This document shows positions 3,834-60,777 of a stretch of DNA of 64,000 nt, one piece after another. The position numbers and the translations under genes were made by a program. Each line of letters begins with the position of its first letter. Position 1 is the stretch's first letter. The notes beneath the pieces were generated by a model, which did not search any database, had not been told where the DNA came from, and saw only the letters and a list, made by a program, of their open reading frames with translations. The stretch is from the IMG/VR virus record IMGVR_UViG_3300023049_000005, positions 206,757 through 270,756 of that record; one strand, given 5' to 3'.

Positions 3834-4053
3834 CTTCTAAAATTTGATTGATTTTAATATCTCTTATTTCTGCTTTGTTTATGAACCTATTCACATTATA
3901 ATAATGTGGTTCACCATAATCATCTTCTACTTTAATTGTATTAGTAGATTCACCTACGTCTAGACAATCGTATTCCTTTAACTTAGTTAAGTATACGTTT
4001 GCCCATATCACACAAATAACTTTACTTCCTTTCTCTATTTTACTTCCTAGCAT
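3823..4053 (-). CDS. Small hypothetical protein with C-terminal RDxKIxxIL tag
   Basis: Ends KAEIRDIKINQILEDEQ. Confidence 0.7.
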   Translation of the reverse strand: MLGSKIEKGSKVICVIWANVYLTKLKEYDCLDVGESTNTIKVEDDYGEPHYYNVNRFINKAEIRDIKINQILEDEQ

Positions 4054-4069
4054 ATTTAATATATATTAC

Positions 4070-4450
4070 ATGAATTGGTTAGATTTCATTTTAGACAACA
4101 TATCCGAATTCGGTTTATATATTACAAAGTTAGAAAAAAAATTCCTAGATAACTATTATTCTAAGGAAATAAATAAAGAACTTACGGAAAGGTACGACTT
4201 TTATAAATCGATATATGAATCAGATGTGTCTTCTTCTTTCTTATTAGAAAACATTACTTTTACCAACGAAACAGATGTAACTGACCTAAAGTTGAATATA
4301 CTATGGGATAATATTAAGGAAGATGATGCTGATAATTTTCAGAACATTTATAATATACCTACAAGAAAATTAAACTTAGAGTGGGAAGACCTAGATGATA
4401 GATATAGAAGGGAGTTCCATTTATATTGGAAAAAATATTATAGGTTTTAA
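4070..4450 (+). CDS. Hypothetical protein
   Basis: 126 aa. N-terminus LDFILDNISEFG resembles IDNILDKISDKG in 60352..60777. TAATATATA at 4057-4065. Confidence 0.6.
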   Translation: MNWLDFILDNISEFGLYITKLEKKFLDNYYSKEINKELTERYDFYKSIYESDVSSSFLLENITFTNETDVTDLKLNILWDNIKEDDADNFQNIYNIPTRKLNLEWEDLDDRYRREFHLYWKKYYRF

Positions 4451-4460
4451 TATATAGACT

Positions 4461-5558
4461 ATGGCTCATATAAACAATTTTCAGAAATTTAACGAAAGCA
4501 AGTTTGTAGAAGAACTACCTGAATACTTCTATCTAATATTACGTGCGGGTGATAGAGATAATAGTAATACTAACACTAAACCTTAGGAAACATTAGCTAC
4601 TATGGAAGCTGAGGGATTAGTAGGGATTAGTTCGACTCCTAATATTATATCTAGTTGGATGGACGTAAGACCTATATTAGTTATGATGCCTGCTGAAGAA
4701 ACTATGAGAATAAATAAGATATTCCCTGTCGATTATTACAATCCTGATCAACTTGTGTCTAATGACCTATTTTTATTAAGAAGGTTAACAGATAATTATA
4801 ATAAAGGAAGTAAGGCTGATCTAAAAGACAAGGAAGACGTAGACAGATTTGAAAGATGGGAATATGATTCTACATTAACTAAGATATTCCAAGTTAGAAA
4901 ATTGAGCGTAGGTAAAAAGAAATCGTCTAGATTAGTAGGAACTTGGCACAGAGATAGAACACATTACCAACAAAAATTATTCGAAACATTTGGACACAGT
5001 GCCTTCTATTACAGAATAGGAGACCATATATCTAATGAAATACAACAAAAGAAATTTAAGATAAATAACGTAAACGATTTAGTCAAAGTGATGGGTGAAG
5101 CTATTGTAACTAACAGAGATGAGTTAGAACATATTACTTATGGTACACATAAACAATTCGAGTGGTTCTTTAACTACTTTGATAAATACGGAACAAAAGG
5201 ATTTAAACAAGTTCTTAATTGGATGATTATAGAACTTTCTAGGGTATGGGCAGAAAAAGAAAACGAATGGATTGTGAAGAAAGATAAGTTAAGTAGTAAA
5301 AGGGAATTTAAGATCCCTAACAATTCACACTTGATTATCAAAACTTTCCCTGGTTATGAGGACGAAGAAGCATATGCTGAGTGGAATCAGAAAAGACAAA
5401 AAGCAAATAAAGAAAATAATAGAAGAGATTTGACACAAGGACTTAGAGAAGATTATGCTAAAGAAGCAGTAAAAGATTACCATTTAGATAATATATATGA
5501 TATACACTATGTAGATAATTTACATGAGGGTAAGAAAAAAGTAAATGAAATAAAATGA
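4461..5558 (+). CDS. Putative ADP-ribosyltransferase-like protein with N-terminal tag, interrupted by in-frame TAG at 4584-4586 (readthrough candidate or pseudogene)
   Basis: TAATATATA at 4448-4456, then ATG 4461 MAHINNFQKFNES...YLILRAG...TKP*ETLATMEAE, in frame with ORF 4602..5558. ART-like R (LILRAG), S (GISST) and ExE (EKENEWIV). Confidence 0.55.
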
Positions 5559-6085
5559 AATACATAAGAGAATATAATAGCAATGTTTATAACTATATAA
5601 AATCAATCATTGATACTAAGTTCAATGAGTTAAAATATGATACTGAATTTTTAAAAGAAGTATATAATATCATAGATATATGGGTTTATATAAAATTTAA
5701 AAGCGATAATTCACTATTAGAGGATACTGAAATATCTATGGAAGGCTTCGATACGAGTTATGATTTCGCAGACCAAATAGCAGGCTTAGAGACTGCCGTT
5801 CTTGAAAGTGAAATGGAGATAGAAATCGATATAGAAACTACTTCACCTGATTATATACAACAGGATTTTAAATTTAAGCTAATAGATAAAGATAAGCTTA
5901 CTAAAATGTATAATTTTTATGACAAACATTCATATATTATGAAGAAGGCAAATGAATTATTTATTAAATATAAAGACGATATGGAAATTAATTATAGATC
6001 AGACGGAAACGAGTTGGGTATAACATACACCTTTACTGTAAATATATCTGAAATGACTAATATGATAAAAAAATTAAATAAATGA
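5555..6085 (+). CDS. Hypothetical tagged protein (MKYIREYNS...MIKKLNK family)
   Basis: Shares both termini with 6082..6633 and 49886..50380. Confidence 0.7.
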   Translation: MKYIREYNSNVYNYIKSIIDTKFNELKYDTEFLKEVYNIIDIWVYIKFKSDNSLLEDTEISMEGFDTSYDFADQIAGLETAVLESEMEIEIDIETTSPDYIQQDFKFKLIDKDKLTKMYNFYDKHSYIMKKANELFIKYKDDMEINYRSDGNELGITYTFTVNISEMTNMIKKLNK

Positions 6086-6633
6086 GATATATAAAAGAAT
6101 ATAACAGTTATATAGAAAATCAAAGTGAGTATTTTGGGGCATATATGGATTCATTTATTGAAAGTAATAAATGGGTATATTCTTATGTAAACGAAAGTAG
6201 AGTAAGTTTTCTGTTCTCATTTAAAGGTGATATAATTGTTTATGATGAAAATACAGGAGAAAGAAGCTCACATATCCTAAACACTCCTTTACAAAACAAT
6301 AAAGAAAGGGTACTTGATCATTTAAAAAATGATGCTTTAATATCCGCTACTATAAGAGCAGGATTAAATATTAAATTAGAAAACGTAGAATTAGTTTGTA
6401 TATTAAATGTAGGATATAATAAAAGATCTGATTGGTATGATATAGAAAATATCAAATCAATAGAAGACGAATTAGACAAGAAAAAGGGGCTAGTTGAAAA
6501 ATTAAAAAGATTAACTACATTTGATAAATCAGATGTTCAAATAAGCCCCAATCTAGATGCCTTTGTGCATAAAAGATATATTAATATTAACATTGATGAT
6601 ATGTATAACATAATGAAAAAGTTAAATAAGTAA
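6082..6633 (+). CDS. Hypothetical tagged protein (MRYIKEYNS...MKKLNK family)
   Basis: Overlaps the upstream gene by 4 nt; same terminal motifs. Confidence 0.7.
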   Translation: MRYIKEYNSYIENQSEYFGAYMDSFIESNKWVYSYVNESRVSFLFSFKGDIIVYDENTGERSSHILNTPLQNNKERVLDHLKNDALISATIRAGLNIKLENVELVCILNVGYNKRSDWYDIENIKSIEDELDKKKGLVEKLKRLTTFDKSDVQISPNLDAFVHKRYININIDDMYNIMKKLNK

Positions 6634-9428: not shown

Positions 9429-9691
9429 TCTTCCACAGAAGAGAAATAATAGTCATCAGATCCATAGCAATACCAAACGTCTATACCATTTGCTGTATCT
9501 ACGTAGTCTAAATATGCTATACGCTGTTCTTGACATTCCATTGAGCCCCAATCCAACCCATTAGCTCTATCTATTGCGTCTTGCTGACCATTAGGAGCTT
9601 CATGACCTGATAAGATATCACCAAAGAAACATCTTTCTTTGTAATCATGGTTTTCGGTTATATATTGATCAAATTTTTTAATACGATTCAT
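9425..9691 (-). CDS. Small tagged protein (MNRIKKFDQYITEN)
   Basis: 88 aa with capsid-targeting-like N-terminus. Confidence 0.7.
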   Translation of the reverse strand: MNRIKKFDQYITENHDYKERCFFGDILSGHEAPNGQQDAIDRANGLDWGSMECQEQRIAYLDYVDTANGIDVWYCYGSDDYYFSSVED

Positions 9692-12324: not shown

Positions 12325-12829
12325 ATATTTAAAGATCTATGATATAGAGGACATTAATAAAAATGGTGTTCATATCAAAAGACAGATCGTTTCTAGAACA
12401 AATGATAACTTAGATATATCTGTTGCAGGTACTGTATATGATACAGAAGAAGAAGTCTTCTATCTAGTAAAACAGTATAGAGCAGGTGTAACTGACGAAG
12501 ATCGTTATATGGTCGAAGTAGTTGCAGGAACTGTTGAAAGCGGTGAAAATCCATTAGAATGCTTCAAGAGAGAAGTTATGGAGGAAGTAGGTGTTAAGGT
12601 GAATAGGGTCACTGAAGTTGGTTCGTTTTATGCCTCACCAGGCTTTTCGAAGGAACAAATGTACTTGTACCACGCAGAGGGTGTTAGAGTTGCCGAAGGT
12701 GGTGGACTAGAATCAGAAAACGAAGATATCGAAATCCTTAAAGTTTCTAAAGAAGTATTAAGAGATATGCTTTATAGAAACAGAATAAAGGATCTTAAAT
12801 CACTGACTTTATTGAAAGACGTTATATAG
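12299..12829 (+). CDS. NUDIX hydrolase, ADP-ribose/nucleotide-sugar pyrophosphatase type
   Basis: LVKQYR, Nudix box AGTVESGENPLECFKREVMEEVG, SPGFSKE, ENEDI. Confidence 0.88.
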   Translation: MELEKKFDEYLKIYDIEDINKNGVHIKRQIVSRTNDNLDISVAGTVYDTEEEVFYLVKQYRAGVTDEDRYMVEVVAGTVESGENPLECFKREVMEEVGVKVNRVTEVGSFYASPGFSKEQMYLYHAEGVRVAEGGGLESENEDIEILKVSKEVLRDMLYRNRIKDLKSLTLLKDVI

Positions 12830-27088: not shown

Positions 27089-30000
27089 ATGAGTAACAGT
27101 ATTCAAGAAACATATAGTTCAGCACTAGTAAACTATTCAGAGCCTAGAACAATTAACGGTGTACATTACACGAGGTTTTACACAGAATTCAACACTGAAT
27201 TGTCTGTAGGTGATTTCGTGTATATCTTAAATGGTAATTATGATAATACTGATTTACTTAACATCAACGAATATCAACAAGGAACAACGGGCTATGAAGT
27301 ATTAGAGATCGATAGAAATTCGATAACTTTAGATATCTTATATAGAGATGAAGATCCGTGGAACGAAGACCCATTCGCTGATTATACTAAAGTATATTTA
27401 GTTGATAATATCCAAAAATTTAATTATGAAAATATAGATAACTCGTTTGGTTTCGAAGGTCAAAGTGGGGATAAATACAGTATATTTAATAACAATGTTT
27501 TCTTATCTCAAATAGAGGATATGGAATATACCCAAGAAACAGGAACTAACCAAAGATTTTTTAAGTCTTTCTTTGATCCCGAACGTACTTTAGGTATGGT
27601 CGATATGAGAGGACAATTATTTAATGATTCCACGGAATTAAAATTCGATCTAGAAGAACTAACCGAATATAGTTTAGTTGAGCCTAACGGGGCATCAGGT
27701 AGTACATATGCTAGGTTTTCTAGTGGGCAGAATAATATAAGAGATTTTGATATAGTAACACAAGTTGATTATAGTACAGATGAAATAATAGAGAGATTAA
27801 TATCACTTAACTCATCTAATTCAGCTACTAATACAGTCAATTTATGGACACTTAATAAAAACACATTAGATGGTATAGGTGATGTTACACTAAGAAATAG
27901 TTTAAATACAGAAGATGTGAGTGCTAATATAGTATCCCCTTTTATTAAAAAAGACGGATTGGGGGCATTTTCGGGTAGTCTTATTGATATTAGATTACCG
28001 AAATATTCAGGTAGTACATATAATTATATAAGTTCTCAATCAGGGGGTGCTATATTAGGTAATACTTCAAGAACTTATACACTTAGAGATATAAATCAAA
28101 CAGTAATAGTGGGATATGATGATCCTACTTTTGAAAACAATTATAGAGCATTTGGTTTTTATAATTCTTCGGATCTATTGTCTGATAAATTTATATCACC
28201 TGATTCACAGGATGATAGTTGGACAATTGCTAACGGTCAGGGATATATAGACGGTAATACACAGTCTACTCCATATTTTGCTTTGTCGTCAGGTTTAACA
28301 GGGTCTTATAATTATACAGGCGACTTTGTTTTCCCACAACGACAAATTGGAGGATTTAGGGTATATGGAAATATAGTACCACCATACGCAGAATATAGTG
28401 GTATAGGTAGAGCAGTTCAAATAGAAACAAATACGTGGAATAATTCAGTAGAGGATTCTACACACCATGAGTTAGTTTTTGCGGGAACAGGACTTACATC
28501 ATCAGTCGATCCATTACAAGGAGGTGCTTATTTTTATTCATATGGAGGCGTTTGGCGTGATTATGATAGTATCTATAATGGTAATAAAATGTTAGGTAAT
28601 GCGTTTGAGCTTTCTAAAACAACTTTTGATGAATATAAAACAGGGAGTTGGTCACAGTCTAGTTTTAACCCATTTGGTGATTTTGATGATTACCCGTTCG
28701 CAGATTTAAAAGATATTAAATTCTTAGGATACGAGAAGAAAGATTTTGGATTAAATATCTATTATGATAGTGCAGGTACACCTGTTAATACGTTTTCGGC
28801 TCTTACTTTTGCTTTACCTACTTTCGGTGGTATTGGTGGTGGTGAAACTTTTGCTTTACCATCGGAATTCGAATCTAATGGAGTATATTATTCTAGGTAC
28901 TTAGTAATTACTGAAAGTGGTACTTCTTATATAATAAATTTATTATTTAACAGTGTTCTTTTAGCGGTAAATACTGATTTCTTAACTGATATGCAGAATG
29001 GATTACCACAAGTACATGTAGTAATACAAGAAATAGACACTGATCTTAGCCAACCAACAGAAATCGGAGTGCAAAGGAATTTAAACGTTTTTGATTTCCC
29101 TGAATTAATAGGGGGGGATTATCCAATTGTGTCTATATACGGAACACATTCTTATTATGATCCTATAAGCGGAACATTTTCGGGGTTTGACTTTAGTGAT
29201 ATTAATATAAGTACTATTGATTTTAGTGACCAAAGATGGCTAATAGGTAGCTCTGAACTAAGCCCAAGGTTAAGTAATTCTTCTCTTTTATCAACAGATG
29301 CAAACCAAGGTGTTTATGTTTTTGATAGATCAATAAATGATACTACTTATGAGTTTAGTATAACAACAACTACTGAATTTGATACAGGTGATACTTTACC
29401 TTCAAACAAAATATATAAAATATTAGGAGAGGTTATAAATAATAAGAGAAGAGTTTGGGTAGCTACGAACACAGGTCTATTTATGTTTGATTATGATCTA
29501 GCATATACTTTTGATTATTATTTTAGAGTAAATTTTGATGATAATGAAATAGAACTAGATGAATCATTATATAAGAATGACAGACTTTATGTGATGGAAG
29601 AATTCACGTATGATGGAAGATTATTCGAAAAAGATAAAATATATCGTCATTTAAAAGACGAAAAAAGATGGGTAAGGGATACTACATACGAAAGATCGTA
29701 TTTAACTAAAGCTCACATGAAAGATGGTACTATATTAGAAGGTGTCTTCAATGATGGTATCTTCGGTAATAAAAACACTGTTGCAAATTGGGAAGGGGCT
29801 ACTTGGAGAAATGGGATAGTTTATAATGTGGATTGGGATAGTGGTACAATGAGTTCTAAATCTGATATTATATTAAGACAAAATTATTATGCTACGTTAG
29901 ATAATAGCAAAGTTAAGATAAGTACTGATTTTACTAACAATGAAGGATATGGTTATAATTTAGTTAATTTCTCTACACTTAAAACGGGTGATGTCTTAAA

Positions 30001-33000
30001 TGGAACAATATTAAATACAACAATTGGGTTAACTGTAAGTAGTAGATTATTGGATGATACGTATAATGGATTATCGTTTAGTTATAACGATTTAGAAATT
30101 GTTAGATCTAAGATAGAAAATTCTACTACGAATGCGATACAACTTGGTAATTCTATGGTTAGTAGATCAGATCTAAATTCTACTTTTGTTAATGATGCTC
30201 AATTGATTAATAATAATGTATATGATAGTATAATAAATGATGCAACAATAGAAAACCAAGGTAATATTAAGATATTAGGATACGAAAAATGGTTTAATAT
30301 CAGAACTAAAACGGAACAACAGGATATATTACAAATTCATAAATTCTTTATTAACGAAAAGGATTTTAGTAAGTTATCATATGAAGATTGGGTAGTTTTC
30401 AATAACGTGCAGTTAAGTAATAATAACCCGTCTAACATACTCGATAGACTGTTCTATGTCTTAGGTGGAGCTGATGGATATTACCAAGATGTATATGAAG
30501 ATTTAAATAGAATATTTAATAATAAGTATAGAGAGAATAATTTTAAGATATTTATTTCTAAACGATTAGAAACACAGAATAGACAAAGAACTAATATTAG
30601 ATATAATGGTGTTCAGTTAGTTGTAGATACTGCAGAGAACGAAAGTCCTATGTATTCTATTGATTTAAATATAGTAACTAATGAAATACCATATAATTCT
30701 GATTCGAGTATTTATTTAAATGCTTTAGAAAATGATGGTATACTTAAAGTAAATGCTACTAATATAAGTAAAGCGGTTTTACAGAATTACCATTTTAAAA
30801 ATAGTTGGATTAATGGTGGTACTTGGTTAAATGGTTCTATGATACAACCTGATCAGTTAAATAGTTTATATAATTATGGGTCAGTTTCTTCTACCACTAA
30901 TAGTGTTACAGTTGATTTATATGATAATAATTATGAGATAAAGTCTTCTGATATACTTGATAATGAAGTTGTACATATAAATAACATATGGGATAGTAAT
31001 TTCTTAACGTATAGTGGTGGTGATTTTATGATCGTATCAGGAACAACATCAAGAGTTTTAGAACCGTATGGTGATTTCGCAACAAACGCAACACTATCTG
31101 TTCCTATGAGTCAATATACTACACTTAATTTAAATAGAATTGACGGAGTAAATAATAATTTATCAATTGTAAGTGGTGTATTTAAGAACCAAAGTTTTTC
31201 TAATTTAAGTATACAAAACGAAGAATTAGATGTAAGAAATTTAAATTATCAGAATATTAGAAACTTAATGGTTATAAATTCTGAAATCACAAAGAGAGAT
31301 AATTTAGAGATACAAGATATATTCTTAGGATATGGACATGTCTCAAATGACTTTACTAGCAAAGAAGAATTTGGTTTAGATCTTATATCATATAAACAAA
31401 CATTAACAAACGTAAATGTTTTTGATGGTATAGTTACTAAGTCTGCTTTCATATCAGGTACATTCTCTGATGGTATATTTACTAATAATCGTTACAGAGA
31501 TATCAATGATTTGATTCCTATTAACAATAGAACCTATGCACCAACACAAAGTGCTGTGATATCTTCATGGCATTTCGGTAATTTCCTAAACGGGGAAGTT
31601 TCTGATTCAACTTGGTTGAATGGTACATTCTCTAATGGAATATTCTTAAATAGTGAATTCTTAGGTGGTATTTGGTCAAATGGTGAGTTTGGTGATATAT
31701 CAGGTAGACCAACTCTTAACTTATTTAGAAAGGGGTTGTGGTTAAATGGTGCTTTTAATAATGGAATATTTGGCGATGATGATAAAGAAGTTGGTACGAT
31801 AAATAGTATTTATACTAATAATAAGTATATTTTAGAAAGTAATATTTATACTAAAGAAGGAACAAATATATGGGAGAAAGGTAATTTCAACAATGGTGTT
31901 TTAACTTCTATTAATAATAATGTAACAATATGGAGAGACGGTAAATTTAACAATGGTAAAGTAAGTGGGTCTGTTATTTGGTATGATGGTATATTTAATA
32001 ACGGTAAATATAGTTCTAGATACGGTAGACAAGTAGCTAACGTAGCAGGTGAAGTGGATTTATTAAGTCTTGCGGATAGTTCATTAGCAGACGGATCGAG
32101 AACATTAAACTTAAATGGTATAACAGCTTCTTTCCCCTTCTTAGATCAATATAGTATTGCTTCTATTAGAGATATCAATGCTAATAATCCAAACCTATTT
32201 GATAACGCAGGAACGATTGTTCTTGATACTAGTGATAATCAATTAAAGTTCGGTTATGTTTCTTCTACTACAAGTAATACAGTGCTTGATCCATTTGATA
32301 CTAACTTATCTTCACATGGTTTCACTGAAAAGGCTGCTGATGATTTCTTTACGGGTACTATATCAAATTTATATATGCAGTTCAAACCATTAGATTACGA
32401 AGCAATTGGGACAAGTGTACACCCACTTAAAAATGCTAACATATTAGGTGCTAAGATATTCGTTCAAGATACTTCAAATGAATATATTTATGATGGATCA
32501 AGTTATGTTACTCAATCTAATTTCTTATCTGCTACAATAAGTGGCACATCGTTAACATTCAGTAGTTATTATTCTTGGAGAAATGGTGTATTCAATAACG
32601 GTGAATTTGGATTAGCGGATAATCCAAATAATATAAACCCATCATGGGAAAACGGTACTTTCAACGGTGGTGTTTTTAATGGTAAAGTTTGGAAAAATGG
32701 AACATTCGTAAAGGGTAAATTTAATGGTTCGGGTACAAATCAGTTACAAACTAGTAGTACAAATATATTTAAGGGTTATGACCCACAAGCAAGTATAGAA
32801 GAATATATCGATGATTATAGTCTATCTTTTATAGCAGCACAAAACCAAGGACAAGGATCATATAAAGTTATTTTAGATAAATATGATTGGTATGGTGTGT
32901 GGTTAAATGGTGAGGTTTCACCAAATATTAGTGGACTTAGTGTTGTTTTATCTAATTTAGAAAGCGCAGTATCTAACGTAACACCCAATTTAAGTTTTGG

Positions 33001-36000
33001 GTTAGAATCCGCATTTGCTCCTTCTGCTACTAACACATCTGTTTCCAATGCTCTTTCTAATAATTCAGGTTTATTGACAAACACATCAGTTCTTTCTAGT
33101 CCTGTTAGAGAAAATATACTTGTTGAATATTTCAACGAAGATAAATATAATAGAAGAATTAATAAAAGACCCATATTCGATAAAATGATATGGGTAAACG
33201 GTATATTTAATAACGCAGACGGAGAATTTAATGAAAGTGTTTGGCTTAGTGGTACTATGAAAAACGGTACATTTAGAAATTCTATGTTCAACCCATATGT
33301 ACAAAGATGGGATTTCGAAACAGGTGATTTAAATAATATAGAATTTAAATTTGACTTAGATACTGAGAACACTATATGGGAGAACGGAACATTTGATAGT
33401 GGTATATTCTTTTTCTCTGATTGGGAGAACGGAACATTCGAAAATGGTGTAATGATGGGTGGTAACTTTAAGGCAGGTAGAGCTAATTATATGTCTGCAT
33501 ATTCTTCTATTTGGGAAGGTGGTAGATTTAGAAATGGTAATTGGTTCGGGTCTAACTTTACGTTTGATAATATTTACAACGATCCATCTATACCCAATCC
33601 TTTTGAGTACTTACGTAATTATTTTGCTAATGTTCAATTTGCTCCTTTCGTAACAGATATTTTAGGTAATAATAGTAAGAGATTACAGGATGATAGATTA
33701 CATATATGGAATATAATAGAAGGTGATATTACTAATAGTGTTTATAATATAACAGGTCATAGTTTTGGTACTGATAGTGGATCACAAATAATCAATAACG
33801 GAACAGTAGATGTGAATAACACATACAGCTTTACTGATATATCAACTAGCCCCGCATCGGGTATATATAGATTGGAATTAAGTATATCACAAACACCAAT
33901 TGTTTTCTCTACATATGACTATATTGTGAATTTCACATTAGTTGACCAAAAGAGATATGATGAAGGGGTGTACGAAATTACTTTTTATACCGATGGTAAT
34001 ATTTGGAGTCCTATTCCAATAGTAAACAGCACGGTGTTTGAATTATATGCTGATATATACGAAAACGGTATATTAATCGAACCTGATGTATTACTAAAAC
34101 AAATCCCAATAGGTAGTTATAAGAATGTTAGGAAAACCTTTGAGGTATTAGAAAATCAAGAATATGTACTTAAAATAGAAGCCCGAATGAGTGTAGATAA
34201 TGGTACTTACACGGAGAGTTATTACTTAGCAATAGAAGAAGTAGTGGCTGAGGTTGTTTACTCAAATAAAAATAATGATCTAGAAGGGTCAATAGAATTA
34301 AATTGGGAAGGTTCATACTTAAATTCTACTGCTTCGACTGCTAGTGCTTCATTAACTTATACAAATACATTAAGTTTAGAAGATACTATTCGTTATACAG
34401 GTTTAGATGTATCTACTATAAGTATACCTACTGTATATAAAGATTATTCAAGTGCGTATTCTCAATTTGGAAACGGTACTTTCCAATCAGGTATATTTGA
34501 AAACGGAATATGGAACAACGGATATAGGGGAACAGAATACGGTCTTTATATAATAGAAGACGGTGATGTTTATCCTGGGGCGACATTAAGTTATGTTCAT
34601 TTGGGTGGTTCTTCGTCTATAGTAGAAACTAATCCATTATATAGCGATGTCCCTCAAGTTAAATATAGAACAGAACCAATTGTGTATTTTAACAGAGTAC
34701 AAAGAAGCTTTAAAGTAGGAAGAAGAAGATGGAGATTCGTTTTAGAAAGTGCTTTTGATATTGATGCTGCTAATAATACAGAAGAATATAATAGATTAAG
34801 AGTAAGTGATCAAGTGTCTATTTCTAATATAATAGCAATAGATATTAATGGTAATAGAAAATTAATTAAAGATGTATTTAGAATAATTAGAATACCAAGT
34901 AGAACTAGAATAGTAGTAGAGTATCAAGAAACTTTCCCTATCGATAGTATCCAAATAGATAGCGATAGACACTTAATTGCGGTTAGTAAAAACGTATGGT
35001 TTAATGGTGCTTTCTTAAATGGGTATTTTAAAGGTAATATGATAAACGGATTTGTTAGAGGAAATAGAAATATCACCAAGATAGAAGACTCTCAATTAAT
35101 AGACGTTGACTTCCAAGGTGGGCATTTTGTGAGTAAGAAATACACACTTAGTAGTATATTCGATACAAGAACATCCAATTCGTTAAGTTTATCTCCACAA
35201 TTCACAGAGAAATATAATAGCTTATATCATAGTGGATTAATACAAAATATGACATTCGATGATGATGTTACTTTAACCAATTATGGGTTATATTCCACAG
35301 AAGGAGTAAAAATAAACGGAAATGGGATTGGTGATCCTAAGAATGTAACTTTTGGTGCTACGGCAGTTTCGGAAGCACTTCAATATATCTATAATAGTGA
35401 CATGGATCTAGTGTATGAACCTGAATATTATAGTAGTGTATTTAACCAAAATATTATCAATACACATGCTATAAACGAATTGGAAATTGGTGAGTTCATC
35501 CCCACTAAACTATATAACATACCTGCGGGTTATATTACTTATGATGTATTAAATAGTGTATCTAATTTTAAATATTCGACTGAGCCAAATAACATTGAGG
35601 GGGTAATAGAATATAAATTAAGTTTAGGATCTAAATATAAAATATTTAATGATTTATTTAATGTTGATTTTTCACAAAGTCCAAATAATGATCCTGATAT
35701 AGATGCACCATCTACTTTTAATATAGTGGAATCAGCAACATATGGTATATTCAGACAAGGATCTATATCTAATGGTATCAATTTTAACCAACTAGAATCA
35801 CAATTTATACACGAAGACTTTATGTATATATTTGATACTAGTAGTAATGTTACAGAAAAAATAACAGGGAACAATACGTTTAAACTTAGAAATAGATATC
35901 ACTTAGTAGAAGTAGATGTAGAATTTACTAATAAAACAGTACCCAATCCTTATGTTATAACTAATACCGTTACTATAGGCACTACATATAGTTATGGTAC

Positions 36001-36661
36001 ATTCTCACTACCTAAATTAAGTATAGGGCAAGCCTATAACGAATATTTTGAAAATATTAATTTAGGTGGAACAAGTGGTTATATATCATCTTATGATAAT
36101 GATATGGTCGGATTTATTGATGGGACAAAATTAAGTGAGATAAATAATTTTGGAAATATTGGTGATACTAAACGATTAACCATGAAGTCATTTATGTATA
36201 ATAACTTTGGTGGGTATAGAGATTCAGTGAGAGTTATAGAAAAGGGCTTTAATGTTGATATAGGTTCAACCAGTAGCGAATATACAGTTAATTCTCCAAT
36301 TTATTATAAATTTAATCATTATGAGATAGATAAAATTCCTTTTTATGATTATAGAAGTTATATTGATCCATTAAGTGGTGAGGTAACAGATTGGAATATG
36401 TTAGCAAACCAAGATCAAACTAGAAAAATAGATGATAGGATTAAAACACCTTTCTATGCTTCTTCTGTTCCTATTAATTATCAAGACTCTAATTTTGTAT
36501 TAACTGATAATATAAATTTCTTAGGTGGTTCTAATATAACAGGTAATGTGATTATTGAAGAAGTAGATACATTATCAACAGCTACTATACAAGAATTATT
36601 AGATTTACTTGCTGCTAATAAACAATTTAATTTTGGTGGTGGTGGTCCTCAATCATTATAA
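27089..36661 (+). CDS. Giant (3190 aa) probable virion structural protein with WxNGxFxNG pentapeptide-like repeats
   Basis: Late promoter at 27062-27070; many WxxGxFxxG repeats; N/S/T/G-rich; no Cys seen in the translation. Confidence 0.65.
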   Translation: MSNSIQETYSSALVNYSEPRTINGVHYTRFYTEFNTELSVGDFVYILNGNYDNTDLLNINEYQQGTTGYEVLEIDRNSITLDILYRDEDPWNEDPFADYTKVYLVDNIQKFNYENIDNSFGFEGQSGDKYSIFNNNVFLSQIEDMEYTQETGTNQRFFKSFFDPERTLGMVDMRGQLFNDSTELKFDLEELTEYSLVEPNGASGSTYARFSSGQNNIRDFDIVTQVDYSTDEIIERLISLNSSNSATNTVNLWTLNKNTLDGIGDVTLRNSLNTEDVSANIVSPFIKKDGLGAFSGSLIDIRLPKYSGSTYNYISSQSGGAILGNTSRTYTLRDINQTVIVGYDDPTFENNYRAFGFYNSSDLLSDKFISPDSQDDSWTIANGQGYIDGNTQSTPYFALSSGLTGSYNYTGDFVFPQRQIGGFRVYGNIVPPYAEYSGIGRAVQIETNTWNNSVEDSTHHELVFAGTGLTSSVDPLQGGAYFYSYGGVWRDYDSIYNGNKMLGNAFELSKTTFDEYKTGSWSQSSFNPFGDFDDYPFADLKDIKFLGYEKKDFGLNIYYDSAGTPVNTFSALTFALPTFGGIGGGETFALPSEFESNGVYYSRYLVITESGTSYIINLLFNSVLLAVNTDFLTDMQNGLPQVHVVIQEIDTDLSQPTEIGVQRNLNVFDFPELIGGDYPIVSIYGTHSYYDPISGTFSGFDFSDINISTIDFSDQRWLIGSSELSPRLSNSSLLSTDANQGVYVFDRSINDTTYEFSITTTTEFDTGDTLPSNKIYKILGEVINNKRRVWVATNTGLFMFDYDLAYTFDYYFRVNFDDNEIELDESLYKNDRLYVMEEFTYDGRLFEKDKIYRHLKDEKRWVRDTTYERSYLTKAHMKDGTILEGVFNDGIFGNKNTVANWEGATWRNGIVYNVDWDSGTMSSKSDIILRQNYYATLDNSKVKISTDFTNNEGYGYNLVNFSTLKTGDVLNGTILNTTIGLTVSSRLLDDTYNGLSFSYNDLEIVRSKIENSTTNAIQLGNSMVSRSDLNSTFVNDAQLINNNVYDSIINDATIENQGNIKILGYEKWFNIRTKTEQQDILQIHKFFINEKDFSKLSYEDWVVFNNVQLSNNNPSNILDRLFYVLGGADGYYQDVYEDLNRIFNNKYRENNFKIFISKRLETQNRQRTNIRYNGVQLVVDTAENESPMYSIDLNIVTNEIPYNSDSSIYLNALENDGILKVNATNISKAVLQNYHFKNSWINGGTWLNGSMIQPDQLNSLYNYGSVSSTTNSVTVDLYDNNYEIKSSDILDNEVVHINNIWDSNFLTYSGGDFMIVSGTTSRVLEPYGDFATNATLSVPMSQYTTLNLNRIDGVNNNLSIVSGVFKNQSFSNLSIQNEELDVRNLNYQNIRNLMVINSEITKRDNLEIQDIFLGYGHVSNDFTSKEEFGLDLISYKQTLTNVNVFDGIVTKSAFISGTFSDGIFTNNRYRDINDLIPINNRTYAPTQSAVISSWHFGNFLNGEVSDSTWLNGTFSNGIFLNSEFLGGIWSNGEFGDISGRPTLNLFRKGLWLNGAFNNGIFGDDDKEVGTINSIYTNNKYILESNIYTKEGTNIWEKGNFNNGVLTSINNNVTIWRDGKFNNGKVSGSVIWYDGIFNNGKYSSRYGRQVANVAGEVDLLSLADSSLADGSRTLNLNGITASFPFLDQYSIASIRDINANNPNLFDNAGTIVLDTSDNQLKFGYVSSTTSNTVLDPFDTNLSSHGFTEKAADDFFTGTISNLYMQFKPLDYEAIGTSVHPLKNANILGAKIFVQDTSNEYIYDGSSYVTQSNFLSATISGTSLTFSSYYSWRNGVFNNGEFGLADNPNNINPSWENGTFNGGVFNGKVWKNGTFVKGKFNGSGTNQLQTSSTNIFKGYDPQASIEEYIDDYSLSFIAAQNQGQGSYKVILDKYDWYGVWLNGEVSPNISGLSVVLSNLESAVSNVTPNLSFGLESAFAPSATNTSVSNALSNNSGLLTNTSVLSSPVRENILVEYFNEDKYNRRINKRPIFDKMIWVNGIFNNADGEFNESVWLSGTMKNGTFRNSMFNPYVQRWDFETGDLNNIEFKFDLDTENTIWENGTFDSGIFFFSDWENGTFENGVMMGGNFKAGRANYMSAYSSIWEGGRFRNGNWFGSNFTFDNIYNDPSIPNPFEYLRNYFANVQFAPFVTDILGNNSKRLQDDRLHIWNIIEGDITNSVYNITGHSFGTDSGSQIINNGTVDVNNTYSFTDISTSPASGIYRLELSISQTPIVFSTYDYIVNFTLVDQKRYDEGVYEITFYTDGNIWSPIPIVNSTVFELYADIYENGILIEPDVLLKQIPIGSYKNVRKTFEVLENQEYVLKIEARMSVDNGTYTESYYLAIEEVVAEVVYSNKNNDLEGSIELNWEGSYLNSTASTASASLTYTNTLSLEDTIRYTGLDVSTISIPTVYKDYSSAYSQFGNGTFQSGIFENGIWNNGYRGTEYGLYIIEDGDVYPGATLSYVHLGGSSSIVETNPLYSDVPQVKYRTEPIVYFNRVQRSFKVGRRRWRFVLESAFDIDAANNTEEYNRLRVSDQVSISNIIAIDINGNRKLIKDVFRIIRIPSRTRIVVEYQETFPIDSIQIDSDRHLIAVSKNVWFNGAFLNGYFKGNMINGFVRGNRNITKIEDSQLIDVDFQGGHFVSKKYTLSSIFDTRTSNSLSLSPQFTEKYNSLYHSGLIQNMTFDDDVTLTNYGLYSTEGVKINGNGIGDPKNVTFGATAVSEALQYIYNSDMDLVYEPEYYSSVFNQNIINTHAINELEIGEFIPTKLYNIPAGYITYDVLNSVSNFKYSTEPNNIEGVIEYKLSLGSKYKIFNDLFNVDFSQSPNNDPDIDAPSTFNIVESATYGIFRQGSISNGINFNQLESQFIHEDFMYIFDTSSNVTEKITGNNTFKLRNRYHLVEVDVEFTNKTVPNPYVITNTVTIGTTYSYGTFSLPKLSIGQAYNEYFENINLGGTSGYISSYDNDMVGFIDGTKLSEINNFGNIGDTKRLTMKSFMYNNFGGYRDSVRVIEKGFNVDIGSTSSEYTVNSPIYYKFNHYEIDKIPFYDYRSYIDPLSGEVTDWNMLANQDQTRKIDDRIKTPFYASSVPINYQDSNFVLTDNINFLGGSNITGNVIIEEVDTLSTATIQELLDLLAANKQFNFGGGGPQSL

Positions 36662-39013: not shown

Positions 39014-39778
39014 ATGAGATTTGTAAAAAAATATGATAAATTCTTAGAAAGTTATTCAGAAGATATCGATGAAGTAATGGATGATAAAGATAACGAATAC
39101 GTTCTAATAGAAAATGGTGAAGTAAACTCAGCGTTTGAAACAGTAGAAACAGCATTCGAATACTTAGCTGATATGTTAGAAGACAAAAAGCAATTAGATA
39201 TTGATCAAAAAGAAGAATTTTTAGAAATCACTAAAGAAGAATTGGGTAAACTAGATTCTGAAATCATATTACAAGAAGAGATAGATTTCGTATTAAACTT
39301 CATATTAGATCGTTTTAATATAGTAGAACCTTTTGAAATCAAAGCTAGAATAGAAATAGAAGATACTCCAATAGATGATACTATCGATACAGAACTAGAA
39401 GAACTATTAGGAGAAAGTAAAGAATATTTAATATTCTCATCTGATGGGAAAGAATTAGATGGTTTTGATAGTAAAGAAGAAGCAGATGATTTTAAAGAAG
39501 AATATGATAAAGTCTATAACAGTTGTAAAGTAGTTCATAAAGATGATATGATTAAAGAATCTGTTTTATCCGAGAGAGGTTGTGATTGTGAAGATTGTGA
39601 ATGCCATAAAACAGGATTGTGTTCATGTGGATCAGATTGTAGTTGTACTAAATGTAAGTTAATTAAAGTACATATGCGTCATTGTAACCAAGGAGATTTT
39701 GAAGATTCTTGTAAGTATGGTGATCCTAATTGCCCTATGTTAAACCAAGAGCAAGAAGAAGATACTTTTTCAAAGTAA
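39014..39778 (+). CDS. Acidic tagged protein with metallothionein-like Cys-rich tail
   Basis: MRFVKKYDKFLES; CDCEDCECHKTGLCSCGSDCSCTKC...HC...C...CP. Confidence 0.7.
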   Translation: MRFVKKYDKFLESYSEDIDEVMDDKDNEYVLIENGEVNSAFETVETAFEYLADMLEDKKQLDIDQKEEFLEITKEELGKLDSEIILQEEIDFVLNFILDRFNIVEPFEIKARIEIEDTPIDDTIDTELEELLGESKEYLIFSSDGKELDGFDSKEEADDFKEEYDKVYNSCKVVHKDDMIKESVLSERGCDCEDCECHKTGLCSCGSDCSCTKCKLIKVHMRHCNQGDFEDSCKYGDPNCPMLNQEQEEDTFSK

Positions 39779-45754: not shown

Positions 45755-45828
45755 ATGTATATTTTATAACAAATAGAATTAAAGTAGAGTTAAGAGATAG
45801 AGCTTTAAATTCTGTTACCCCAAATTGA
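45755..45828 (+). pseudogene. Collapsed remnant of a C-terminally tagged gene
   Basis: ATG TAT ATT TTA TAA (MYIL*, like MYVIL at 45352) out of frame with ITNRIKVELRDRALNSV. Confidence 0.45.
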
Positions 45829-48800
45829 ATCGGCTTTAGGTGTTCCTCTGTAAGCACCAACCTCAAATTTAAATGGTTCGCCTTTCAGATTAACTTCTAA
45901 TTCGTGTGGTAATTGTTTAAAGGTCTCAATAGATTTATTAGTATCTATTTGGTTAGGTTTTAAATACCCCTTAATTATATAAGGTAATTCCCCTTCTGTC
46001 TCTTCTAACGAATCATAGAAGTTGGATAATTGATCAAATTCTAAACACCAATGCTCACCTAGTTCTTTATCATCCAAATCAGATATATTATCTAAGAATA
46101 CTAATCGATATACTTCACCACCTTTTTTATTTAAGGTTTTAATCATATTGTTATAGTATTCCCATTCTTCTTCGGCTCTATCACCATCTTCGAATTCACT
46201 TATAAACCTTTGGTCTAATTCTTCTTTAATGAAGTCTGAATATTTTAATACAACAGATTCATTAGCTTCTCTAGGTATAAATTCATATAACCTATCGTTT
46301 AATCTTTCATTATAGTCTTCATAATCATTATCATCAAAAGAAACATAATTATTGTCACCTGAATCGGGGCTAAATTTTCCTTCCGCTTCTGTATAAGCAT
46401 TAAACATATTAGATACTTCAAATTCTTCTAATCCACTATAATCTCTTAGATTACTTAAGAAGTATTCGTTATCACACATTTCCCATATATCGGGAATCAC
46501 TTCAATGCCACCGTTAGTATATTTTATTAAACTATTATTTTTGAAATATTTTAATATTTTGTCTAATTCATTAATAGTATTATCAAACCATTTTGATCCT
46601 TGTGCATCTGCCTCAGTTTGACTATATGCTCCATTAATTGCGTCTATTATCTGATCTGCTTCGAAATCATCATAAAAATCTTCATCCTCTGTTTCATAAT
46701 CTTCCTTTAAAACTGATTCTATATCATTTCTTAATTGTCTTAATTCTGCGTCCTCGCTGTATAACTCTTGTGATTTTTTATAACTATAACTTGATTCTGT
46801 GTATTTATCAATAGCTGAGGTATTTATGTCTAATCCATCACTTTTTATTATAGATATTATATCTCTTAAATTATGAACTGTAATCTCATCAAATATACCA
46901 CTTTCTTCAAAATAATTAAAATCATTATGCCACGCATCAAACATATCATAATAATTCTCTAAAGAAAAGTTCATACCACTACTATCATATAGATCCTCTA
47001 AATCAGATAATGTTGTTTCGTATACCCACGCTTCTTCTTCCTTATCATAACTCATACCAATATTTTCATAAAAGACTTTGTTGTATTTAGTATCATGGTA
47101 TGCTAAAGATAGTAGAGCAAAACTATTACCTTCTTCTAAATATTTCTCTAATAATTCTTCATTATTTGCTATACTATATCCTATTAGTTTAACTACGTCT
47201 AAGTCCTCTGTATGGTCTTCATAATATAGTTTGTCACATAAAGTATCCATACTAGTTTCATTTAAATATTTTACAATTTGTGTATCTAATCCTATATTAT
47301 TTTTATTATACTTACTAAGGATAACTTCGTCTTTTTCGCCTGCCCAAGTAGTTAATACTCTATGTAGATTATCTGAGATATAATCTAACTGATCTTCTTC
47401 ATCATCATTTACCATTAAATATTCCCTTTTAATTAATCTATCATATTTATTGAAAAAAGAATAATAATCACCAAATGTTTCAAATGTTTTAACTTCATCA
47501 AATAATAACTCTAATAATTCACCTAAGAACATCTCTATTTCTTTTTCGAAATCATTTACAGTAGGTTTAGAAGGCATCTTGTTATAGATGTCAGATTGGT
47601 TAAAATATTTTTTCATTCCGTTAAGACCAACTTCTTTGTTATTAATCATATCATCTATCTGTTCTTGTATTTTAGGAAAATCATTAATGTCTTTTATGTT
47701 AACAATATTATCTTCTACTACTAATTTTCTTAACTGTCTAGCACTAGCATTAGACTTTACCATTTTAAGAATCACTATAATAGTAAATAGTTCTTTAATA
47801 TTATATTCTTCTTTTTTGTGTGCTTGTAATACCATACTTAGATCCAATACTAACCAAGAGAATATATACTCATTAGAGATTACATAATTTAATAATTCTT
47901 CTGTTTCTGATATAGCTTTAAGATCGGTTATAACTTTTGTTATAACTTTCCTATCTATCTTAAATTCATTAGATACGTCTCTGATATATGGATAAACTTC
48001 TTTATCTAACTTATTTATCTGTTTAATAATTCTATTTATCTCAGTTAAATCTTCTTTGTTTGATAGATACTCAGCTAATGGTTTTGTTAATTCCTTTGAG
48101 GCTATTAAGTAAAACATATCCTTATCGAATAATTTAACCGCTTCTTCTGTTTTAATTAACATAGATAAGAATTTAGGTAACTCTCTACTATTGGCTACTT
48201 GTTCAATGTTTAACATTTTCTCATATTGTTCAGATGTCAATAATTTCATATCTTCTCTGAACTCTAAGGACACAACAGACTTTTCATAAACTTCATAAAG
48301 TTTACTGTTTCCTTTTTCTAAAATATCATAAAACGCTTCGAAGTTTCTTTTACTTAACATATTATATGATGATACATATATCTCTTGTCTAGGTGAATCA
48401 ACTACTCCCGACTTTGTAACAAAGTCTATTAGTATTAAGTAACCACCATTATTCCCTGTTAAATATTCTAATATCCTTTGTTCTAAATTAGAGCTAAAAT
48501 AAAAATATGATAATACTAGTTCTAAGAATTCAACACCTATCTCTTCTGTAACTTTATGTGCGCTTATTATTTCGTATGTGTTGAATATACTTTTTAAACT
48601 TTTACCCTTAGATTCAAATCCTAAGGCATTAAAAAACAATGCTGCGTCTGTTGCGTTTTCTAATTCCTTTAAACCTTTCAATAATCCAATTAAATCATTA
48701 TAATAGAATAAAGAATTGAATAATACTTTACTGTCTTGATTATCCTCTTGGAAATATTTAAGGCTTTCTTTTGGTATGTTCACTTCTATGTCACCTATTT

Positions 48801-49842
48801 TCATTGGTTCATTTAGCTTTTCAATAGTCTTAGCTATACCATTATTCTTAGCAAACTCTATCATATCTAAAGTACCACTATTGATTTTATTATAAATTTC
48901 TTCATATTTGGATTTTAATGATCCTTTTGGTATGTCTGTCATATCATATATCCTATTTAAATCAACGGCATTATTATTTTTGTTCTGTGATCCACCATGT
49001 AAGGTTTTACCTTTAGGGTCAATAGTAATCCCAAATTCTGAGTTAGGGTTAGATGCGGGTAAGTTAAAGTTGAATATGAAATATTGTGTATTATATTTAC
49101 TTTTATCTAAATAACTATCATAATAATTATCGCTATATACTATACACCATTTTTCTGAACCTAAGTTACACACGTGTTCCTTATCACTTGTTTCTATGGC
49201 TAATATGTTATTCTGATTATATACGATATTAATATCATGTTTCTTTACGTATTCTAATACTTCTTTCTTTCTCTCATTAACATCGGATTTATTAATAAAT
49301 TTATCTAATGTATCTAGAAACTCACTGATCGAAATATCATTCTTTTCGAAATATTTCAAAGGTGTGAATAGTTTTTTGTAATCTTCTTTTAGATCCATAA
49401 AAGACAATGCAAGTTGGTTGAACTTTTCCATTCCTTCTTCTCCTAATCTATCTACTTCACTTCTCATACTACTGTATAAAGATTTGTAGAATTTTTTAAT
49501 CTTAATTTGATCTTCAAGTTGTACTATATCATCTGATATTTTTTCTAAACTATCATATTGAATTAGGTTCTTAGGAAGTTGTTTGGATATGTTTTTGTTT
49601 TCTTTATACCACTCTATTATTTCTCTAGCTTTTTCTAAGGCTCTCTCTTTGTTTTCTTCTTGGAAAATTAGTTTTGTAAAAACATAAACTAAGTTCGGGA
49701 ACTTTTTAAGTAGTTCTCTAATAGCCTCAAATATTACACTGTTGTCTTGATCGACATCAATATTATATTCCTTCTTTAAAAAAGATTTTGCTTGTTTTAT
49801 ATTCTCTTTAAGTAAATATGTGTTTTTATCTAAGATAAACAT
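45805..49842 (-). CDS. 1345-aa multidomain protein: CxLGSxxWCI module (paralog 3 of 3) plus C-terminal ART-like domain
   Basis: VCNLGSEKWCIV...QYFIFN...SEFGIT; internal NESVVLKYSDFIKEE, then VYR...LGEHWC...HELEVNL. Confidence 0.7.
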   Translation of the reverse strand: MFILDKNTYLLKENIKQAKSFLKKEYNIDVDQDNSVIFEAIRELLKKFPNLVYVFTKLIFQEENKERALEKAREIIEWYKENKNISKQLPKNLIQYDSLEKISDDIVQLEDQIKIKKFYKSLYSSMRSEVDRLGEEGMEKFNQLALSFMDLKEDYKKLFTPLKYFEKNDISISEFLDTLDKFINKSDVNERKKEVLEYVKKHDINIVYNQNNILAIETSDKEHVCNLGSEKWCIVYSDNYYDSYLDKSKYNTQYFIFNFNLPASNPNSEFGITIDPKGKTLHGGSQNKNNNAVDLNRIYDMTDIPKGSLKSKYEEIYNKINSGTLDMIEFAKNNGIAKTIEKLNEPMKIGDIEVNIPKESLKYFQEDNQDSKVLFNSLFYYNDLIGLLKGLKELENATDAALFFNALGFESKGKSLKSIFNTYEIISAHKVTEEIGVEFLELVLSYFYFSSNLEQRILEYLTGNNGGYLILIDFVTKSGVVDSPRQEIYVSSYNMLSKRNFEAFYDILEKGNSKLYEVYEKSVVSLEFREDMKLLTSEQYEKMLNIEQVANSRELPKFLSMLIKTEEAVKLFDKDMFYLIASKELTKPLAEYLSNKEDLTEINRIIKQINKLDKEVYPYIRDVSNEFKIDRKVITKVITDLKAISETEELLNYVISNEYIFSWLVLDLSMVLQAHKKEEYNIKELFTIIVILKMVKSNASARQLRKLVVEDNIVNIKDINDFPKIQEQIDDMINNKEVGLNGMKKYFNQSDIYNKMPSKPTVNDFEKEIEMFLGELLELLFDEVKTFETFGDYYSFFNKYDRLIKREYLMVNDDEEDQLDYISDNLHRVLTTWAGEKDEVILSKYNKNNIGLDTQIVKYLNETSMDTLCDKLYYEDHTEDLDVVKLIGYSIANNEELLEKYLEEGNSFALLSLAYHDTKYNKVFYENIGMSYDKEEEAWVYETTLSDLEDLYDSSGMNFSLENYYDMFDAWHNDFNYFEESGIFDEITVHNLRDIISIIKSDGLDINTSAIDKYTESSYSYKKSQELYSEDAELRQLRNDIESVLKEDYETEDEDFYDDFEADQIIDAINGAYSQTEADAQGSKWFDNTINELDKILKYFKNNSLIKYTNGGIEVIPDIWEMCDNEYFLSNLRDYSGLEEFEVSNMFNAYTEAEGKFSPDSGDNNYVSFDDNDYEDYNERLNDRLYEFIPREANESVVLKYSDFIKEELDQRFISEFEDGDRAEEEWEYYNNMIKTLNKKGGEVYRLVFLDNISDLDDKELGEHWCLEFDQLSNFYDSLEETEGELPYIIKGYLKPNQIDTNKSIETFKQLPHELEVNLKGEPFKFEVGAYRGTPKADSIWGNRI

Positions 49843-49885: not shown

Positions 49886-50380
49886 ATGAAACACATCTTA
49901 GAATACAATTCTTTTAGTGATAACCAAGTAATATTAGACTTTATTAAACATAGTTTACAAGAAGGAGAAGAAACCTTTAAGGCAATGAAAGAAGCCTTAG
50001 AAGACGATTCAATATCATTTAACGTCAAGTTTTCTCTATTTGATATAGACTATATTGATCCTAAGAATTATAAAGGTGAAGATTTTGATGAAGAAGAAAA
50101 AGAAATATTTAAAAAAGAATTTAAAGGAGTGAAGTATATTTCATATTTTAGGTTCAGAGAATATGGAATGGGGACACAGGAAGAGATTGATAATTTTTAT
50201 TATTATGAGAATGGAGCATTTAAAGATATCGTTGGTGATGCTCACTCTTACTTACGTTATTTACTAGATGATTTAGATTACACTTTCCAAGAAGGTCTTG
50301 AAATAAAAATGGTTACTTATGACAATTGGTTAGAGTATACTGCTAAGACCGCAGATATGATCAAAACGCTTAACCAATAA
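49886..50380 (+). CDS. Tagged protein (MKHILEYNSF...MIKTLNQ family)
   Basis: Same termini as the 5555 and 6082 proteins. Confidence 0.7.
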   Translation: MKHILEYNSFSDNQVILDFIKHSLQEGEETFKAMKEALEDDSISFNVKFSLFDIDYIDPKNYKGEDFDEEEKEIFKKEFKGVKYISYFRFREYGMGTQEEIDNFYYYENGAFKDIVGDAHSYLRYLLDDLDYTFQEGLEIKMVTYDNWLEYTAKTADMIKTLNQ

Positions 50381-60351: not shown

Positions 60352-60777
60352 ATGAAACATATTAAACTTTTCGAAAACCATAATATCGATAATATTTTAG
60401 ATAAGATATCCGATAAAGGAATCGATTCATTATCTAAAAATGAAATCGACTATTTAGACAGCACTAATAGCCCTAATAAACTATTAAGAGAAAGATTAAA
60501 TAACGTTCGTTTTATACAAGAAAGTGTAATGAAAAACGAAGGGTCACTAGGTATGGGCGAGTTACAGGCAGAAGCTTCTCCTGTTGTTACAGAAGAAAGT
60601 AATGAAATACATCTTGTTGAGATGCTATTTGAAGAAACGTGTGATGTGGTAGTATACGGTGGACACAATCTAGAAACCGTAATGAATGAATACCAATTGA
60701 CATATTCTGAGTTAAGTGATGAAACAATTTCTGAAATTTGTAATATAATCAGAAACAGTTATTACTTCGAGGATTAA
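60352..60777 (+). CDS. Tagged protein (MKHIKLFEN)
   Basis: Late promoter at 60339-60347. Confidence 0.7.
   Translation: MKHIKLFENHNIDNILDKISDKGIDSLSKNEIDYLDSTNSPNKLLRERLNNVRFIQESVMKNEGSLGMGELQAEASPVVTEESNEIHLVEMLFEETCDVVVYGGHNLETVMNEYQLTYSELSDETISEICNIIRNSYYFED

Follow-up and report, generated by a model that had tools for sequence, protein, structure and literature searches.

Phages that have recoded TAG, such as some crAss-like and Lak phages, carry many in-frame TAG codons, mostly in their late genes, together with a phage-encoded suppressor tRNA. A second theme, also relevant to the locus described here, is the packaging of enzymes into the phage head, of which head-packaged ADP-ribosyltransferases (ARTs) are an established case (PMC5512222, PMC9503650). 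Likewise, polyvalent proteins are held to be packaged into virions and injected, and ARTs and GNATs often occur as partners in them (PMC5512222, PMC9503650). In T4, the capsid-targeting sequence (CTS) has the form MKTYQEFIAE (PMC8442874), in which residues 4 and 7 act in targeting while residues 8 and 10 direct cleavage by the prohead protease (PMC9026906). Here we describe a phage locus at which a single in-frame TAG interrupts a gene with features of both themes, and argue that it is very probably a recent loss-of-function (nonsense) allele of a single-copy gene for a probably head-packaged ART-fold enzyme that is dispensable or counter-selected.

The DNA analyzed (hereinafter the window) is a stretch of 64,000 nucleotides that forms the last 64 kb (206757-270756) of a 270,756-bp IMG/VR virus record, which is ~89% complete, has a G+C content of ~29% and comes from a jumbo phage. 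Along with genes for a DNA polymerase and the baseplate wedge, the genome carries one for a T4 gp21-type prohead protease (genome 97757-98101; PF03420 Peptidase_S77, 30.8 bits against a cut-off of 27). Two very large ORFs lie in the window, namely one of 3,190 aa at 27089-36661 (+ strand) and one of 1,345 aa at 45805-49842 (- strand), the latter without a PHROG match. Outside the window, aragorn called a tmRNA with an atypical tag peptide at genome 105540-105913 (- strand), which is probably a false positive.

The ORF listing presents the locus as two frames, 4461..4586 and 4602..5558, the second running from ATG 4602 to a TGA stop at 5556-5558. The original prediction held these to be one gene with an amber codon between its catalytic motifs, and the layout it described is right: the ATG at 4461-4463 is followed by 41 sense codons, by TAG at 4584-4586 and by 324 further open codons in the same frame, up to 5558. 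Its motifs also lie where it placed them, YLILRAG (4530-4550) upstream of the stop and GISST (4623-4637) and EKENEW (5253-5270) downstream. The features of the locus are as follows:

4448..4456, + strand: start-proximal motif TAATATATA, which ends 4 nt before ATG 4461, the modal spacing of the genome
4461..4496, + strand: N-terminal tag MAHINNFQKFNE, which resembles a capsid-targeting sequence; the pattern recurs in the genome and on homologs
4461..4583, + strand: 41-codon N-terminal stub, comprising the tag, the first strand of the beta core (YFYLIL, followed by R) and the beginning of helix 1
4584..4586, + strand: in-frame TAG, the nonsense allele, known only from the window and its probable source run
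4587..5558, + strand: rest of the gene (ORF 4602..5558), with the remaining ART-fold core and the helical insert
4612..4631, + strand: tandem repeat of AGGGATTAGT in two perfect copies (TRF: period 10, 2.0 copies, 100% match), which encodes G-L-V-G-I-S
4623..4637, + strand: GISST, with G and S nearly invariant in the family, at the position of the 'STS'-like motif of strand 2
5259..5267, + strand: E-N-E, the invariant ExE, which opens a core strand (267-270 in the model)
5530, + strand: private change, GGT (Gly) against GCT (Ala) in all relatives; the second change found in the window allele alone

On sequence evidence, the two ORFs are one gene rather than two, beyond chance, because an intact 363-aa homolog (P0002, 84% identical, found by word search) spans the break and because the conserved N-terminal domain of 131 relatives recovered by an exhaustive search straddles it. 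The best-conserved part of these relatives corresponds to query residues ~10-118, on either side of the break. Within the genome the gene is single-copy.

P0002 is encoded on a 124-kb contig (L007) with the same gene neighborhood as the window. All seven related sequences, namely the intact homolog and six near-identical environmental contigs, have TGG (Trp) at 4584-4586. This codon stands in L007, in the near-identical contigs L002-L006 (five, recovered from other samples, with 99.4-99.8% identity to the window) and in three lake-water runs (X2, X3 and X4), while TAG is confined to the window and run X1; across the family, the column at this site is hydrophobic (L/F/W/V/I). The run alleles were read from contigs of four public lake-water runs placed on window 4000-6000:

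X1 (probable source run): TAG, two repeat copies; 45.7-kb contig, word depth 15.6, 0 differences from the window
X2: TGG, extra repeat copy; one contig, depth 5.6
X3: TGG, extra repeat copy; one contig, depth 4.7
X4: TGG, two repeat copies (intact); 151-nt contig, depth 2.3

Since the relatives carry TGG and intact alleles exist, the intact gene is the ancestral state, and one G-to-A transition converted the Trp codon TGG at codon 42 to TAG. The same change makes AAACCTTAGG more like the AAACATTAGC that follows it (TRF row, window 4578-4596), and ATTAG is also present in the 10-bp repeat just downstream of the stop; the nonsense change could have been templated by a neighboring repeat. The original prediction also raised a sequencing error as an option; that TAG arose in sequencing or assembly from a true TGG we regard as very improbable. 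The codon is admittedly seen in one sample only, and X1 may share reads with the record of the window and so not be independent of it. However, X1 is a Logan assembly made separately, probably from the same sample, and its 45.7-kb contig (word depth 15.6) shows the same base and matches the window without a difference over 2 kb; the allele also carries the further private change at 5530, as a real lineage would be expected to do.

A different lesion is found in the sister genomes. L002-L006 have three copies of AGGGATTAGT as against two in the window, a +10-bp frameshift that leaves a 59-aa stub and a 299-aa ORF (P0001). L007, the intact relative, has an imperfect version of the repeat, which is perfect only in the window lineage; a slippage duplication at it, 26 bp downstream of the nonsense site, gave rise to the sister allele. 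As read from these contigs, the gene has been knocked out twice, independently: the frameshift is present in at least five samples, the nonsense allele in one and the intact allele in one. Over the 6,282 nt that they share, the window and L002 differ by five SNPs and one indel; two of these six differences disrupt the broken gene, in different lineages, and three of the six lie inside it, an enrichment over the flanks that is not significant (p = 0.07). Comparison of the window gene with the intact relative L007 gives a dN/dS of 0.085 (362 codons, dS ~1.0), the broken frame being read by reference; an X filled the break in the alignment, and dN/dS was computed with the stop codon excluded. Such a value reflects past constraint; hence, the coding sequence indicates that the gene was under purifying selection for most of its history and that the breaks are recent.

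Independent knockouts of the gene in the sister genomes lead us to propose that the enzyme would be dispensable or counter-selected in the lake population. As to which of the two, it is conceivable, though we would not bet on it, that loss was selected, with the enzyme or its activity being sensed by a host defence or otherwise costly, so that null alleles sweep repeatedly and the intact, nonsense and frameshift forms make up an ON/OFF polymorphism, for which the 10-bp repeat could even serve as a reversible slippage switch. Two independent null mutations 26 bp apart in genomes otherwise ~0.1% different would fit such a history, as would the spread of the three alleles over the samples, the strength of the constraint until recently and the perfection of the repeat only in the window lineage. 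Nevertheless, there are only two events, the concentration of differences in the gene falls short of significance, a 10-mer present two to three times would be a weak switch, and neutral decay of an accessory gene fits the data equally well. Recent loss of function, whether neutral or selected, is the reading that we prefer.

The original prediction had also offered programmed or suppressor-tRNA readthrough of TAG as a means of keeping the dose of a toxic enzyme low, which we consider highly unlikely. The frame does stay open for 324 codons past the stop, the genome has many tRNAs, and a suppressor tRNA could sit in the ~11% of the genome that is missing or in the host. Against this, aragorn finds no tRNA with a CUA anticodon among the 19 tRNAs of the whole 270,756-bp record (~89% complete); at a relaxed threshold (80%) it returns 119 scattered calls, with three 'cta' among obvious noise. 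Moreover, TAG is an ordinary terminator in this genome. It ends the genes at 12829, 19152 and 27043, from which global recoding had already been discounted, and serves as the stop of 31 of the 277 non-overlapping ORFs of at least 90 aa genome-wide, beside 208 with TAA and 38 with TGA. A genome-wide screen for TAG-joined frames found no other gene with an internal TAG in the 270 kb, and folding of the RNA after the stop revealed no unusual, potentially stimulatory structure (z = -1.49). Every relative has TGG, the near-identical ones included, and suppression cannot explain the sister alleles because a suppressor could not rescue their +10-bp frameshift. The alternative of a recent nonsense mutation, which the same prediction had listed, is therefore the one borne out by TGG in 7/7 relatives, the lack of a CUA tRNA and of any further in-frame TAG in these searches, and the dN/dS of 0.085. 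The amber codon is ordinary in itself, and the gene should be annotated as disrupted and not cited as evidence of recoding. Among the candidates returned by the screen, those at genome 125676-126635 and 201247-202113 proved on inspection to be adjacent genes, and that at 185861-186559 was a low-complexity frame with no evident coding value.

The tRNA complement has a peculiarity of its own. In two arrays outside the window, normal tRNAs of ~75 nt have a partner of 85-89 nt nearby in the same array. The aragorn calls of these long-variable-arm tRNAs are:

genome 73357-73445: long-variable-arm tRNA
genome 162434-162521: long-variable-arm tRNA
genome 162784-162869: long-variable-arm tRNA
genome 163140-163224: long-variable-arm tRNA
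genome 163465-163551: long-variable-arm tRNA

They are assigned to Lys(ttt), Asn(gtt), Thr(tgt), Val(tac) and Cys(gca), and those for Lys, Asn, Thr and Val share their anticodon with a normal tRNA. Because long arms are normally confined to the tRNAs for Leu, Ser and Tyr, these partners look like unusual, possibly mis-charging or decoy tRNAs.

The 131 relatives delimit a protein family for which there is no Pfam, PHROG or NCBIfam model. Its domain occurs alone in ~300-aa proteins of phage-like contigs, fused behind GNAT acetyltransferases, and in polyvalent proteins beside ART-PolyVal, NUDIX, ParB_N, DarA_C or Tpt1-like domains. We aligned 82 relatives and modeled the intact homolog P0002 with AlphaFold (pLDDT 90.6, pTM 0.87). 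The model has a beta core from residues ~20-90 and ~265-350, split by a helical insert, and places a strand at 22-27 and a helix at 38-45, in the region of the N-terminal stub. The nature of this core surfaced only in an exhaustive VIA-align structure search. The best match is the Tpt1 structure 7yw4 (Z 6.9, 113/120 chain residues, 3.3 A), followed by the DarT entries 8baq, 7omv, 7yk3 and 7omu (Z 5.2-5.7), by DUF952 (Z 4.2) and then, lower down, by SpvB, CopC, TreTu, TreX, Scabin, HopU1 and pertussis S1. A second model (pLDDT 90.4), built for a member with only 24% identity, yields the same top list, with Tpt1 at Z 7.7 (106/120 residues), DarT at 6.0, 5.7 and 5.4, and DUF952 at 5.3; DUF952 was also returned by an ESM Atlas search. 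The helical insert itself matches tyrosine-recombinase core-binding domains at Z ~4, which is too weak for a helical bundle.

Given that the two models agree and that the top ranks are purely ART-fold proteins, an ART fold is likely for the modeled family, though the Z-scores are middling (5-8); the 'ART-like' call of the original prediction thus holds at the level of fold, in two independent models. Other approaches give little. Foldseek against PDB and BFVD returns nothing at E <= 0.001; Pfam, PHROGs and NCBIfam have no family match for the window protein or the 82 relatives, with a weak DUF4291 match (E 0.022) in the curated-family searches; a PDB sequence search retrieves only designed helical proteins at E above 0.06; the ESM Atlas feature search gives no usable match; and near and protein-level searches of the phage collection, as well as an IMG/VR scan, give none. 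The comparison by hhalign of the family with an ART-PolyVal alignment of three sequences, a weak test, detects no similarity (probability 0.1).

In P0002 numbering, G53 (78/81) and S55 (76/81) mark the G-I-S motif (G55 and S57 in the window protein), while E265 (63/64) and E267 (64/65) form the ExE (E267 and E269 in the window protein); R68, N83, Y90 and R106 are further invariant residues of the family. YLILRAG, which had been put forward as the first catalytic strand, does form the first strand of the core, upstream of the stop; its Arg, however, is kept in 26/79 relatives only and hence is unlikely to serve as the catalytic Arg in an R-S-E triad.

Upstream of the gene, the motif reported at 4448-4456 (TAATATATA), a putative late promoter in the original prediction, is real and recurrent, and is a genome-wide signal marking gene starts. 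AATATATA, which has 157 copies in the 270 kb, is enriched 20-30x within 35 nt before starts genome-wide. Examples from the genome-wide count that fall in the window are:

1524, 4058, 4449, 22393, 23347, 49874, 54397 and 60340, + strand: copies of AATATATA
2411, 20004, 21214 and 43384, - strand: copies of AATATATA

In 44 of 92 motif-ORF pairs AATATATA lies exactly 12 nt before the ATG, leaving a 4-nt spacer, and the broken gene has the same spacing. Rigidity of this kind points to more than a promoter alone, either to transcripts with little or no leader or to a translation signal. There is no Shine-Dalgarno sequence in front of ATG 4461. In the intact relative L007, TAATATATA is missing from the corresponding segment (5980-6003, against window 4440-4463) and the gene abuts the upstream ORF; the window lineage, unlike L007, has its own start signal before the broken gene.

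The start-proximal motif bears on a further scenario, in which the broken gene still works by reinitiation at ATG 4602 (4659 in the frameshift alleles), giving an untagged and unpackaged enzyme that is retained in the cell. ATG 4602 is in frame and 15 nt past the stop, and both null alleles drop the same N-terminal part and keep a long ORF. Even so, we give this scenario little credence: the motif is absent both before ATG 4602 and before the ATG of the 299-aa frameshift ORF, the truncation costs the conserved domain its first core beta-strand and helix, and the 299-aa ORF also lacks the invariant G-I-S motif. The loss-of-function reading is again to be preferred. With TAG at codon 42, translation from 4461 stops once the tag and the first strand of the core have been made, whereas the intact product would be a protein of ~363 aa with a T4-CTS-like tag and an ART-fold core split by a helical insert of ~170 residues.

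The N-terminal tag of the gene, MAHINNFQKFNE, fits a recurrent pattern. In the form M-x-x-[ILV]-x-x-[FYW]-x-x-[FLI]-x-E, this is found on 8 of 320 ORFs in addition to the broken gene, against 1.6 expected, and many homologs in other phages are tagged too, one of them starting MKTYNDF. A related form, M-[KR]-x-[ILV]-[KR]-x-[FY]-x-x-[FLI]-x-E, tags many otherwise unrelated ORFs genome-wide. The pattern search places tags in the window at the following positions, among others:

6082-6120: N-terminal tag
9652-9691, - strand: N-terminal tag
39014-39052: N-terminal tag
49886-49924: N-terminal tag
60352-60390: N-terminal tag

By analogy with T4, the recurring tag and the prohead protease gene suggest that the phage has a large set of head-packaged proteins. 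On account of the T4-CTS-like tag, the Peptidase_S77 gene and the polyvalent-protein context of the family, we posit that the intact protein would be an accessory enzyme that is packaged in the head, injected and directed at a host macromolecule, and, if its fold is a guide, one that uses NAD+.

Going further, one may speculate, and we do so only tentatively, that this is an undescribed head-targeted ART-fold family, nearest to Tpt1 and DarT, that the phage would inject to modify host nucleic acid and that has now become a liability in the lake population, with independent null alleles dominant in different samples while the intact allele persists. If true, the locus would represent natural escape or an ON/OFF polymorphism at a phage effector, for example with the enzyme as a trigger of host defence. 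Short of that, two independent mutations have abolished the gene in environmental genomes that are near-identical, with the intact allele still circulating, and this amounts to a natural experiment, if a small one, on whether such effectors are dispensable or selected against. The family, as modeled, also contributes to the phage repertoire a candidate effector that would be injected and use NAD+, one that had gone unannotated.

In comparison with known systems, the locus shares an in-frame TAG in a phage gene with the stop-codon-recoded phages, but differs from them in that the TAG is single, no suppressor was found and TAG is a normal terminator. Structurally, the best match of both models is Tpt1/KptA, the RNA 2'-phosphotransferase (Z 6.9 and 7.7), followed by four entries of the DNA ADP-ribosyltransferase DarT (Z 5.2-6.0), although there is no detectable sequence similarity of the family to either. 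Tpt1 has an R-H-R-R tetrad, in place of which the family has invariant S, R, N, Y, R and ExE. Nor does it conserve the beta-1 Arg or His seen in classical ART triads. With ART-PolyVal (PF18760; Iyer et al. 2017) the family shares a setting, the N-terminal half of its domain sitting in polyvalent proteins and also being fused to GNAT domains (PMC5512222); nevertheless, the two are separate modules that occupy other residues of the same polyvalent proteins and have no profile similarity, and ART-PolyVal has H-Y-D where the family has S and ExE. The gene also has parallels in T4 Alt, the ADP-ribosyltransferase that T4 packages in its head and injects, and in the T4 internal proteins that bear a CTS, since its product is an accessory enzyme of a phage and combines the ART fold with an ExE (PMC5512222). 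The short N-terminal peptide has hydrophobic or aromatic residues at 4 and 7 and an [LIF]-x-E site as in the T4 CTS, a likeness only (PMC9026906), and a gp21-type prohead protease is encoded in the genome, as in T4. On the other hand, the family has no sequence similarity to the Alt/VIP2 clade and no conserved Arg on beta-1; in fold it comes closest to Tpt1 and DarT, not to ARTs of the Alt or cholera type; and the core, unlike that of T4 Alt, is split by the ~170-residue helical insert.
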